A DNA stretch of 64,000 nt from Blastocystis sp. Blastoise (lineage: Eukaryota > Protista > Bigyra: Opalinata): positions 930,001 to 994,000 of the forward strand of contig JBBPEB010000030.1 in the NCBI GenBank assembly GCA_039096225.1. Direction: 5' to 3'. The translations under genes and the position numbers were made by a program. The notes under the pieces were generated by a model that was given only the letters and a program-made list of their open reading frames with translations, had not been told where the DNA came from and did not search any database. Below are positions 24,278-44,557 of the stretch, piece by piece (the stretch's first letter is position 1; every line of letters begins with the position of its first letter).

Positions 24278-24632
24278 TTTCAATTCGTAAAGATTAGATG
24301 ATTCTCAGTATTTTTAAATATATAATTCAATGACAACTCTGAATTAAATACTTTAAAATGATGTGTTTTGAAAAATTACAAAAAAAATTCTGAAAAAAAA
24401 ATACATATCTGATTGTTGCTGAAACAATTCAAAAAATTCTATTGTTTTCATAACTTGGGAAAATAGTATTTTTAGTATAAATACAATTAAAAACCGTGGA
24501 AATCAAAGAATCAAAAAAAAAAGCCGCCAAAAGCAGATGATTTCTTGTTTATAGAAAAAAGTGGAACTTAGAGAAGGTTTCTCGATAAAAGGAATCGAAA
24601 TACAAATAGATCTAGTTTATTTTCATTTTTTT

Positions 24633-24684
24633 GAGATAATTGACTCAGGACACTCAGAATTATCAGACTTGACTCAGGACAGTG
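24633..24684 (+). repeat. Left TIR of the MULE
   Basis: GAGATAATTGACTCAGGACACTCAGAATTATCAGACTTGACTCAGGACAGTG is the exact reverse complement of 44303-44354. It contains two TTGACTCAGGACA repeats (24640, 24669). Confidence 0.97.
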
Positions 24685-24849
24685 GTCTTCGGCTCATTCT
24701 ACGAGTGGGGACTTTAAAAATGTTTAAAAATAATACTGGGAAAAACTCTATGTTTATTTTTTATTGACTCTTGAAGGGTATTGATATATTGATGTATATA
24801 TGCTATATAAGTATCTTTAATATGTATATATAGTATAGTATATATAGGA

Positions 24850-25450
24850 AAAGTGATAAGAATGGTATAAGACGGCATTAACATGGTAAGATGGTAATGG
24901 TATTCTATTCTATGGAGTTATGACGTTGTCTGATGTCTTTGAATTGCGTTTTTAATGTAGTGATGAGAATAAGATAGGTATATAATGAATTAAGTAATTA
25001 TGAACATTAACCTTAAAATATCTCTTTAGGCTTCTTCCTTGTTACAGTCATTCTAGAATGGTATACTCTATCATTATATAGGATAAAAGAATGAGATTAG
25101 TTATATTCATAAAAGAATTGGCATCATTATGGGTGTTTATGGTTAATTAACTAATAAAGTTTTCATATTCAATTAGAATGATGTTCTTGATGCTAATTAA
25201 TCTATTAAGAAGTTATATATATATATTATCAATAAATGGAAATGGATTAGGTGCTGTTATGGATTGTTTCTGTTTTATCTTATTAATTATGCTAGTATGT
25301 ATAATTATAGTCATTTAGGATTATTGAATAGTCATATTGGTCATAGTTTATTGGAATTGATCTGGTCAGCCTGCTACTGGATTGTATGTTATTTGATTGT
25401 TATTATACTATTAGAACTCCATTATGATATTACTATATATGTTTAATAGA
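24850..25450 (+). pseudogene. Possible decayed membrane-protein fragment in the MULE cargo
   Basis: Hydrophobic Gly-containing stretches (LGFFLVTVIL, IGIIMGVYG*, GLGAVMDCFCF, LLELIWSACYWIVCY) are broken by stops and frameshifts. Confidence 0.3.
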
Positions 25451-25499
25451 TTAAGTCTTTAAAAATATGAATATATATGTTGTTTTGTTTAGAATTAAT

Positions 25500-42700: not shown

Positions 42701-44152
42701 ACCTTATTATAATCTATTTAAAATGATTTTACATAATAATGACTTTCAATACTTAACATTGTGACCCATTTCTAAATTTATTAGCTTTAGAAACTCCATA
42801 ATAATTAAAGCAGTAACTCAACTATTTATAAATACAAAATATATTTTTAAAATAATAAATAACAAATATAATGATTCAAAAACGATTTCTTATTTTTTTA
42901 AGTATTGTTTTTAGTTTTTCAGATACTATTCAAAAAATTCAATTTAATTCTTATATCAGGAATTGAACCTGATTATAATCAACAAATGATTATTACTCTC
43001 CATATAGAGTATAAGAAGTGTTAATAAAATAATATATATAATATATAATATATAATATATAATAAATAATAAGTAACATATTATAGATAATATTTAATAA
43101 ATAATATATATTATATAATATATAGTAGATAATAAGGAAAGAAAGTGAATAAAAACAAAACACTTATTATTCATTGCAGCCGCGGTCCGGTGCCGTTAGG
43201 CCCCGGACCTGCGGCGTGACCCTAGTAATAATAATAATAATAATAATAATAATAATAATAATAATAATAATAATAATAATAATAATAATAATAATAAATA
43301 ATAATAATAATAATAATAATAATAATAATAATAATAATAATAATAATAATAATAATAATAATAATAATAATAATAATAATAATAATAATAATAATAATAA
43401 TAATAATAATAATAATAATAGCAATAATAATAATAATAATAATAATAGCAATAATAATAATAATAATAAATCTAATAATAATAATAATAATAATAATAAT
43501 AATAATAATAATAATAATAATAATAATAATAATAATAATAATAATAATAATAATAATAATAATAATAATAATAATAATAATAATAATAATAATAATGATA
43601 CGTATTATAATAATAAAATAACCATACTGTTGTATCATGAAAATGGTAATATTCTAAACAATAGCTGCTATCAGCTTTATTGAATTGGCAAATGAAGTTG
43701 CAATCGGCAATGGGACAACGGTATCTAACTGATATTTCAGACCCTCTTTCAATAATAACACTATATCCATGGATACTTGAATAGTATCTCATAAAAACAT
43801 CAATTTCTTGACGTGAATGGAAGACATCATGGAGACCAAACTTTTTGAAACACTCTATATTTATCAGAATAACATCTAAATAATTGTCATTTGCTCCATA
43901 AAAGCCATTACAGCTGTTCTCCAAAACCCATTGTGGATACAATGTGTCATAATTAGCCGGTATTCCTTTAAAAGTTGTTTTTGTTAATGGATTAACCCTT
44001 TTAGTCAATTTAGAACGTTTCTATATATATTATAATTAGTAATATGTACTTTATACAGTAATCATGTCTGGAATATCACTGAAATAGCTTAAAAAATTCA
44101 TGTCGTTGACACTACTCACTATTGACTCGTAAACAGTTTTAGTGACCTGCAT
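33724..44152 (-). CDS. MuDR/MULE-family DDE transposase, 5 exons, 869 aa, apparently intact
   Basis: Exons 44152-44057, 44020-43628, 36778-35686, 34958-34136 and 33928-33724 sum to 2610 nt with no internal stop seen. Motifs: WRKY/GCM1-like DBD (YRCPIADCNF...YHFHD), D1 in IIFLDGTF, D2 in FISDQAKGI, CxxH in HILCFFHL, E in SVSESYN, and SWIM CECKEFQNKSTPCKH. Confidence 0.9.
34983..35675. repeat. (AAT)n-dominated compound microsatellite in transposase intron 3
   Basis: Long AAT tract containing a duplicated AAAAGAAGAATAAGAAGAAGAATAAGAATAAGGATAAGAATATT block (about 35024 and 35292). Confidence 0.9.
37500..38930 (+). repeat. Helitron-internal repeat block 1 (degenerate ~245-bp units)
   Basis: GAGATTCAA at about 37577, 38066 and 38309; CAAAGTGTATGACCAAATG at about 37660 and 38148; TCAGGAATTGAACCTGA at 38844-38860. 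Confidence 0.8.
39025..39480 (+). repeat. Polypurine (GAAG/GGAA-rich) low-complexity tract
   Basis: About 450 bp consisting almost only of A and G on the + strand. Confidence 0.9.
39500..40030 (-). other. Spliced, apparently non-coding exons in the Helitron, divergent from the + strand unit
   Basis: Exons at about 39942-40026 and 39712-39794 are bounded by TAG|G and AG|GTATAT. The first has stops in all three frames. Confidence 0.45.
40458..41560 (+). pseudogene. Helitron-carried multi-exon unit of modular (E/K)GSS exons with two in-frame stops
   Basis: Phase-1 symmetric exons 40458-40592, 40643-40714, 40788-40922 and 40998-41045 (135/72/135/48 nt) start GTTCTT and end AAG|GT. Stops are TAG 40472 and TAA 41042. 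About five more such exons follow. Confidence 0.6.
41930..43030 (+). repeat. Helitron-internal repeat block 2, a direct degenerate copy of block 1
   Basis: GAGATTCAA at about 42175 and 42419, CAAAGTGTATGACCAAATG at about 42259, and TCAGGAATTGAACCTGA at 42956-42972. Confidence 0.8.
43179..43225 (+). terminator. Helitron 3' terminal hairpin + CTAG (rolling-circle termination signal)
   Basis: The most GC-rich palindrome seen in the window, 6 nt upstream of CTAG|T. Confidence 0.85.
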
Positions 44153-44302
44153 AAAACCCGTCAATAGTTTTAAAACAAAAAGAATATATTTGTATTGAAA
44201 ATAATGAGACTTTTATTCACAATTATTTTGATTCCTAGATTGAGAAATAATTATACCGCCAATTTGTTTCATTTATCGCGGTAATTGAATAGCCTATATT
44301 AG

Positions 44303-44354
44303 CACTGTCCTGAGTCAAGTCTGATAATTCTGAGTGTCCTGAGTCAATTATCTC
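44303..44354 (-). repeat. Right TIR of the MULE
   Basis: CACTGTCCTGAGTCAAGTCTGATAATTCTGAGTGTCCTGAGTCAATTATCTC, followed by the TSD CATTTTTTT. Confidence 0.97.
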
Positions 44355-44557
44355 CATTTTTTTTTTGGAAAACCATGATAATTTCTAGAAAAAAAGAAAC
44401 AATGAAAGAATAATCGAAGAACTTCGTATAGAGTGCATGCAAATTAAACTTCTAGAAACCAAAAGATGTTTGTGTAATTGAAATACATTACAAAAAATAA
44501 TAAGTTGCTCTATAACTGTCAATATTATATTTATTTACTTTTTAAAATAAAATTAAA

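Follow-up and report, generated by a model that had tools for sequence, protein, structure and literature searches.

Introduction

Within the Mutator superfamily, the Pack-MULEs (from Mutator-like element, MULE) of rice and other plants are defined by the host gene fragments that they carry and by the lack of a transposase. The MuDR/Mutator elements are known from maize MuDR and from the MULEs of plants, fungi, amoebae, oomycetes and diatoms (PMC6446971), and the ends and genes of the maize Mu elements evolve independently through recombination (Hunter, McCarty and Koch 2023, PMC10401008). A survey of MULEs across eukaryotes lists diatoms and oomycetes as stramenopile hosts, and Blastocystis is absent from the hosts named in its text (2019, PMC6446971). 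In addition, the genome paper on tortoise isolates of Blastocystis gives total transposon percentages only and leaves Mutator elements and Helitrons unmentioned (PMC12129017), and our literature search found no paper connecting Blastocystis with Mutator elements. Here we analyze a stretch of 64,000 nucleotides (nt), hereafter the window, from contig JBBPEB010000030.1 (positions 930,001 to 994,000) of Blastocystis sp. Blastoise (taxid 3128533), a Blastocystis of the tortoise gut whose genome comprises 33,340,088 bases in 34 contigs with a GC (guanine plus cytosine) content of ~21-23%. The window contains a 19.7-kb element with Mutator-type ends, which an earlier note made from the sequence alone had read as a giant autonomous Pack-MULE-like element carrying about 8 kb of host genes and still moving at its full length. 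Coordinates are positions in the window unless they are prefixed by a C-number, which denotes a contig of the same genome (C16, for example, is contig 16).

Our results show that the element is a genuine MULE, the sole transposase-bearing member of a family of 13 copies, with a Helitron nested in an intron of its transposase gene and a long non-coding arm. Its 19.7 kb are made up of a 13.4-kb MULE (13,394 bp for the element proper) and a 6.3-kb Helitron. The right third is occupied by the transposase gene, on the minus strand, and the left two thirds by non-coding AT-rich DNA; the coding part of the element proper amounts to 2,610 nt, and ~80% of the 13.4 kb is non-coding. Taken jointly, the observations are best explained by a 13.4-kb recombinant MULE with a five-exon transposase gene and a non-coding left arm, whose intron 2 later received a Helitron and whose transposase was supplied in trans to other copies, and we regard this explanation as highly probable. 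Overall, this is a fairly ordinary Mutator element in a little-studied host, since its additional length is due to a second transposon and to a non-coding arm found throughout its family rather than to captured host genes. The target-site duplication is abbreviated TSD below.

Ends of the Element and Insertion Site

The two terminal inverted repeats (TIRs) are identical at 52 of 52 positions, and no such pair occurred, or is expected, in shuffled sequence. They are flanked by an exact duplication of 9 bp, a length typical of the Mutator superfamily (~9 bp, with a range of 8-11), and the same TIRs are common to the other family members, as is also characteristic of the superfamily. The perfect TIRs and the exact TSD described in the earlier note are therefore confirmed. 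Each TIR contains two 12-bp direct repeats with the sequence TTGACTCAGGAC, located at 24640-24651 and 24669-24680 on the left, with a spacer of 17 nt, and at 44307-44318 and 44336-44347 on the right; this motif was found in the window only within the two TIRs. Moreover, the terminal 10 nt (24633-24642), GAGATAATTG, are those of the maize Mu end, as taken from the reverse complement of the Mu-specific primer OMuA (PMC3134344), and the first 12 nt match at 11 of 12 positions. The positions of all parts of the element are given in Table 1.

The element occupies an intergenic site, marked by the 9-bp target duplication. A very long gene on the minus strand (10683-24277), composed of large open frames and tracts of AAT repeats, ends ~350 bp from the left end of the element, which places the element just upstream of the start of that gene.

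Table 1. Parts of the Mutator-like element in the window and related loci in the same genome
Feature	Position	Strand	Evidence or remarks
Left TSD, CATTTTTTT	24624-24632		Read from the sequence; same as 44355-44363
Left TIR, 52 bp, variant A	24633-24684	+	Sequence comparison with right TIR
Left arm, ~7.1 kb of AT-rich non-coding DNA	24685-31767 (24633-31767 including the TIR)		Common to 13 of 13 family members; identity break at ~31767
Non-coding DNA specific to the window copy, downstream of the transposase stop codon	31768-33723		Only repeat-type matches elsewhere; tandem repeats at 32645-33223 and (TA)n at 33349-33607
Exon 5, C-terminal basic tail and stop codon	33724-33928	-	Junction agrees with NCBI model WA158_005127; 57% identity to paralogue P0002
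Exon 4, most of the MULE domain (second D in ISDQAKG, CxxH), catalytic E (SESYN), SWIM zinc finger	34136-34958	-	Pfam PF10551, PF00872, PF04434
Intron 3, 727 bp, GT..AG	34959-35685	-	Filled by (TAATAA)n microsatellite at 34984-35676; same position in paralogue P0002
Exon 3, acidic linker followed by first catalytic D (FLDGTF)	35686-36778	-	100% identity to NCBI model WA158_005129 over 90% of the length of that model
Intron 2, 6,849 bp, GTATGG..TATAG	36779-43627	-	Exon model; (ATA)n at 36783-36897, (TAA)n at 43226-43621
Non-autonomous Helitron, 6,328 bp	36898-43225	+	5' TC, GC-rich hairpin near the 3' end, terminal CTAG, no TSD
Exon 2, N-terminal zinc-finger domain (C-x4-C ... H-x-H) with predicted WRKY-GCM1/AFT-like fold	43628-44020	-	AlphaFold model and PDB match
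Intron 1, 36 bp, GT..AG	44021-44056	-	Exon model
Exon 1, start codon at 44152	44057-44152	-	Exon reading; canonical splice sites
Right subterminal region, presumed promoter and 5' untranslated region	44153-44302	-	Inferred from position; ~69% identity to the 13-kb copies
Right TIR, 52 bp, variant A	44303-44354	-	Sequence comparison with left TIR
Right TSD, CATTTTTTT	44355-44363		Read from the sequence
Helitron copies	C23:745972-752296, C31:946203-952590, C20:318631-325058, C22:932171-938533, C8:69423-75780, C29:210413-216769		Genome matches
Copies of the related intact MULE family	C14:132500-138500, C14:501176, C16:374926, C18:363247, C19:145459		At least five copies

The Transposase Gene

The exons of the transposase gene were found by reading the minus strand and by comparison with an intact paralogue, and were joined locally to count stops and to locate motifs, while protein searches and folding used single exons rather than the joined protein of 869 amino acids (aa). 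Joined, the five exons give 2,610 nt, or 870 codons with a terminal stop only (a frame of 869 codons), and the four introns (36, 6,849, 727, and 207 bp) all have GT..AG borders. Pfam searches assigned the MULE domain (PF10551, E 1.7e-13, 51 bits against a cut-off of 27.6), Transposase_mut (PF00872, E 5.9e-7) and the SWIM zinc finger (PF04434, E 5e-5), and the catalytic residues D510, D574, and E671 are present together with the CxxH that follows the second D, in agreement with the internal DDE transposase that had been noticed earlier. The coding sequence is complete and uninterrupted, as in an autonomous MULE, and the window copy is the likely autonomous member of the family.

Further support for the exon model comes from the paralogue P0002, a protein annotated with 892 aa from a related family in this genome, which is collinear with all exons over its whole length and has introns at positions matching those of introns 2 and 3. 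This related MULE family has intact transposase genes, listed in the annotation as hypothetical proteins of 892 aa, with 63% core identity to the window transposase and the same intron positions; it gives no match to the 19-nt terminus of the window family even when 2 mismatches are allowed, and other subterminal repeats lie in its upstream region. Among 1.84 billion representative proteins scanned with HMMER, only three matches had E-values below 1e-30, all from the Blastoise genome; the next two, also from this genome, were 29% identical, and the best outsider reached ~26%.

The N-terminal part of the protein is encoded by exon 2, in which no significant Pfam domain was found. Its AlphaFold model has pLDDT values of 70-85 over residues 64-128, a part consisting of a helix and four strands, and the best PDB match of the model was the DNA-binding domain of yeast AFT2 (4lmg, E 2e-3, TM 0.42-0.46), followed by weaker matches to WRKY domains. 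Besides, the pattern of exon 2 fits the WRKY-GCM1 type of DNA-binding domain described for MULEs (PMC1702500). The predicted N-terminal zinc finger of WRKY/FAR1/AFT type thus has moderate support, which we do not put higher because Pfam misses the domain.

A Family of Thirteen Elements

The first 19 nt of the TIR have 25 exact matches in the genome, corresponding to 13 elements. Eight of the other 12 copies have both ends and measure 12.8-13.9 kb, and the remainder are truncated or interrupted by insertions; the twelve align with each other at 85-98% identity. Perfect TSDs of 9-10 bp, all different, flank five of them (C16, C33, C8, C26, and C31b, with TATTTTGTTT, TTAAATTTC, TTTGACAATT, AGTTATATG, and TTGACTTTT), and the C16 and C33 copies are 98% identical over 12.9 kb; the family has thus moved recently. 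The genome-wide search with the TIR proposed in the earlier note has therefore yielded other paired copies with different perfect TSDs, and the objection that no other copy exists no longer applies. The description of a giant, recently mobile transposon with cargo, however, is only partly upheld: recent movement of the family is indicated by the five TSDs and by the two copies that are 98% identical, whereas none of the other copies carries the Helitron and no host cargo was detected. Since the Helitron is confined to the window copy among the members of the family, no jump at 19.7 kb is demonstrated.

A search for PF10551 in the other twelve copies gave no match. In the copy that was read in detail, tandem repeats (~2.9 kb) stand in place of exon 4, and stops occur in the other exons. 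The twelve 13-kb relatives are non-autonomous siblings of the window element.

Some copies may have multiplied by other routes. At C15:87822-122946, two family copies lie in mirror image, with their right ends facing at 101762 and 108970, matching scores and no TSDs, an arrangement that looks like a palindromic duplication of ~35 kb. Likewise, the 12 bases of left flank are identical in the copies at C31:533389 and C31:641419, and one of the two probably arose by segmental duplication rather than by transposition. In metagenomes, two matches to the 19-nt terminus were dismissed as chance hits, as neither continued into the TIR.

The Left Arm and the Question of Captured Genes

The left arm is where host genes would have to be sought, and several lines of evidence indicate that it is instead a constant part of the family. 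It is present from position 1 in every member, and its identity to the 13-kb copies (95-97%) lies inside the divergence range of those copies themselves; being shared by all 13 members, it cannot be a capture specific to the window copy. The supposed cargo, which the earlier note took to have been captured long ago and carried through later jumps, is in fact this constant non-coding arm.

No open frame of more than 95 codons of non-repetitive sequence was found in the left arm or in a majority consensus of 11 copies, and none of the copies has a frame resembling protein. Ten pieces, among the most protein-like ones, gave no significant Pfam match at E<=1, the best of them had no homologue among 5.8 billion proteins, and no Rfam family or transfer RNA gene was detected in the arm. 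A search of the genome with the DNA of the arm returned only family copies and low-complexity matches, with no parent locus. In a self-comparison, about one third of the arm consisted of a degenerate AT-rich repeat. Codon usage was uninformative about hidden exons, for AAT repeats dominated the scan and the exons of the transposase themselves escaped it.

Taken together, these results do not bear out the ~8 kb of captured intron-containing genes that had been proposed: no frames, Pfam matches, homologues, RNA genes or source locus were found, and a further 6,328 bp of the element belong to the Helitron. The reading of the locus as a giant Pack-MULE-like element that still moves with its host genes can call on the perfect ends and TSD, on the presence of a transposase gene, and on two GC-richer patches of the arm (24633-25500 and 30600-31800) that might pass for old exons. 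However, these patches vary more among the copies than the AT-rich parts do, and because they are less conserved they are unlike constrained exons; the 6.3 kb are an independent transposon that no other copy holds. We therefore consider that reading very unlikely. The Pack-MULE-like label is also unsuitable, since a transposase gene is present and searches by frame, Pfam, homologue and genome DNA found no host gene or gene fragment, very old and fully decayed fragments being beyond the reach of these searches.

The Nested Helitron

The remaining length of the element is explained by a Helitron inserted between A and T of an (AAT)n microsatellite within intron 2 of the transposase gene. With the insertion this intron, which separates the DNA-binding exons from the catalytic ones, grew from 521 bp to 6,849 bp, while the reading frame was unaffected. 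The nested element has the features by which Helitrons are recognized, namely a 5' TC, a 3' CTRR end that follows a hairpin, a target between A and T, and the absence of TSD and TIR. At least 10 near-full copies with 92-99% identity were found elsewhere in the genome, and in seven of seven copies compared the arrangement was A|TC...hairpin...CTAG|T, with the same hairpin and with neither duplication nor inverted ends. A scan of open frames found no stop-free stretch of more than 116 codons and none resembling a Rep/helicase in the window Helitron, which is therefore taken as non-autonomous.

The window Helitron is 99% identical to another copy. It is young, and the transposase gene may therefore have worked until recently.

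Mosaic Structure and Exchange Between Copies

Identity to the 13-kb copies falls abruptly at ~31767, from 95-97% in the left arm to 62-69%, and remains low up to the right TIR, including the subterminal region. This sharp break implies that the histories of the left arm and the right arm differ, and the present element would most likely have originated when an old lineage bearing the transposase and the non-autonomous family underwent recombination or gene conversion, by which the two arms were joined. Elsewhere in the genome the right-arm lineage has left just one trace, a fragment of 334 bp (C15:166342-166675) that matches the beginning of exon 3 and the last part of intron 2 at 93% identity, from which it follows that at least one more copy of the right arm once existed.

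Within the left arm, the best-matching copy changes between successive segments of 500 bp. An assembly artefact might produce such a pattern, either because the arms were wrongly joined across a repeat or because the left arm was "corrected" toward its relatives; a 7-kb repeat present in 13 copies would invite this, and shifts of the best match per 500-bp segment are what mis-polishing might yield. Nevertheless, the 9-bp TSD agrees across both outer flanks, which is not what a wrong join would produce, the switch at the arm boundary is clean and lies within continuous sequence, and other copies share the architecture with TSDs of their own. An artefact of this kind is thus extremely unlikely as the explanation of the locus.

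The TIRs point to exchange as well. Two variants occur in the family, and all six differences between them lie inside the spacer of 17 nt that separates the conserved 12-bp repeats (for example, 24652-24668 in the window and the TIR at C26:253694-253745). The variants do not track the similarity of the interiors: most elements have the same variant at both ends, despite interiors that are up to 96% identical across variants, which implies that the two ends were converted in concert. An element of ~16.7 kb (C15:801258-818005) combines a left TIR of variant A with a right TIR resembling variant B and has no TSD, and is a heteromorph or a recombinant element. The youngest pair of 13-kb copies carries the TIR variant of the window copy, a correspondence that fits, without proving, mobilization by the transposase lineage of the window.

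Discussion

The structure of the locus suggests how the family may have operated. The zinc finger of exon 2 would bind the 12-bp repeats that are paired in the TIRs, with the cutting and pasting of the element left to the DDE core. The window copy, or a recent ancestor of it, would have supplied transposase in trans to the non-autonomous copies of 13 kb. The left arm would have come from these ~13-kb relatives, and the right arm, with the sole catalytic exon of the family, from a much older lineage. The Helitron inserted later into the (AAT)n microsatellite of intron 2, bringing the total to 19.7 kb.

Several observations weigh against this interpretation, or at least against a functional transposase at the locus. 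Apart from the 334-bp fragment there is no second right arm, and the uniqueness of the window copy makes its own age and mobility unmeasurable. Part of the fine-scale mosaic among copies could be a product of repeat polishing during assembly. The NCBI annotation has no full-length transposase model at the locus: the 181-aa model WA158_005127 takes in exon 5 together with the last part of exon 4, and the 346-aa model WA158_005129 opens with a nine-codon exon from the Helitron (37319-37293, minus strand), joined by splicing to the usual acceptor of exon 3 at 36778. The split annotation hints that the Helitron may divert or interrupt the transposase transcript. Besides, intron 2 with its 6,849 bp stands far apart from the other three introns of the gene (36, 727, and 207 bp), and introns are reported to be longer and more variable in tortoise than in human isolates (PMC12129017). 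The first exon of WA158_005129 may reflect exonization driven by the Helitron, or else the place where a truncated transposase, devoid of the DNA-binding domain, now begins.

These observations bear on whether the gene is still active. It is a real possibility, if one we hold tentatively, that the gene is a dead relic inactivated by the Helitron or by silencing, and that the 13-kb copies were moved by a lost sister copy or by the related 892-aa family. The fragmented annotation, with one model starting inside the Helitron, would fit such a relic, as would the at least five intact copies of the related family, 63% identical in the core, and the surviving fragment of a second right-arm copy. On the other hand, none of the five exons is interrupted by a stop and their splice sites are canonical, the related family differs in its ends and subterminal repeats, and a Helitron as young as 99% identity to another copy suggests would leave room for a gene that worked until recently. 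At the other extreme, the window copy could be a live master, with a messenger RNA spliced across the 6.85-kb intron, a protein that mobilizes the twelve 13-kb elements by way of the paired 12-bp TIR repeats, and an arm retained and exchanged time and again between master and passengers on account of a role in cis, such as chromatin targeting or escape from silencing; this we consider unlikely. The recombinant MULE that supplied its transposase in trans, itself or through a recent ancestor, remains our preferred explanation of the locus.

Neither gene capture nor transposition of record size is shown by this locus. Its value lies instead in being a clean case of one transposase-bearing copy accompanied by twelve long non-autonomous partners, with exchange of arms between elements and a Helitron that sits in an intron and leaves the frame intact. 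In addition, the analysis should aid the annotation of repeats and genes in the genomes of tortoise Blastocystis, where such genes appear as fragmentary hypothetical proteins.

Compared with known systems, the element resembles the Pack-MULEs of rice and other plants in having Mutator ends around a long interior that does not encode transposase, and differs from them in having a transposase gene and no detected host fragment. The nested element is like other Helitrons in its TC start, 3' hairpin, CTAG end, insertion between A and T, and absence of TSD and TIR in seven of seven copies, but the nested copy is without a Rep/helicase open frame. With the MuDR/Mutator elements (PMC6446971) the window element shares the 9-10-bp TSD, TIRs with internal repeats of the transposase-binding type, a transposase with a MULE domain, CxxH, C-terminal SWIM and a putative N-terminal zinc finger of WRKY-GCM1 type, non-autonomous partners with the same ends, and the terminal 10 nt of maize Mu. 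It differs in its TIRs of 52 bp, against 150-250 bp in maize Mu (PMC10401008), and in that no second gene of the maize mudrB type was found in it. Finally, as in the recombinant (heteromorph and homomorph) Mu elements of maize (PMC10401008), the TIRs, the transposase gene and the internal parts have separate histories, owing to recombination or gene conversion among divergent elements, with the difference that in the window family a non-coding arm of 7 kb has been exchanged and the variation between TIRs is limited to a 17-nt spacer. The locus thus adds a stramenopile case to the evidence from maize that the ends, genes and internal parts of Mutator elements evolve separately.

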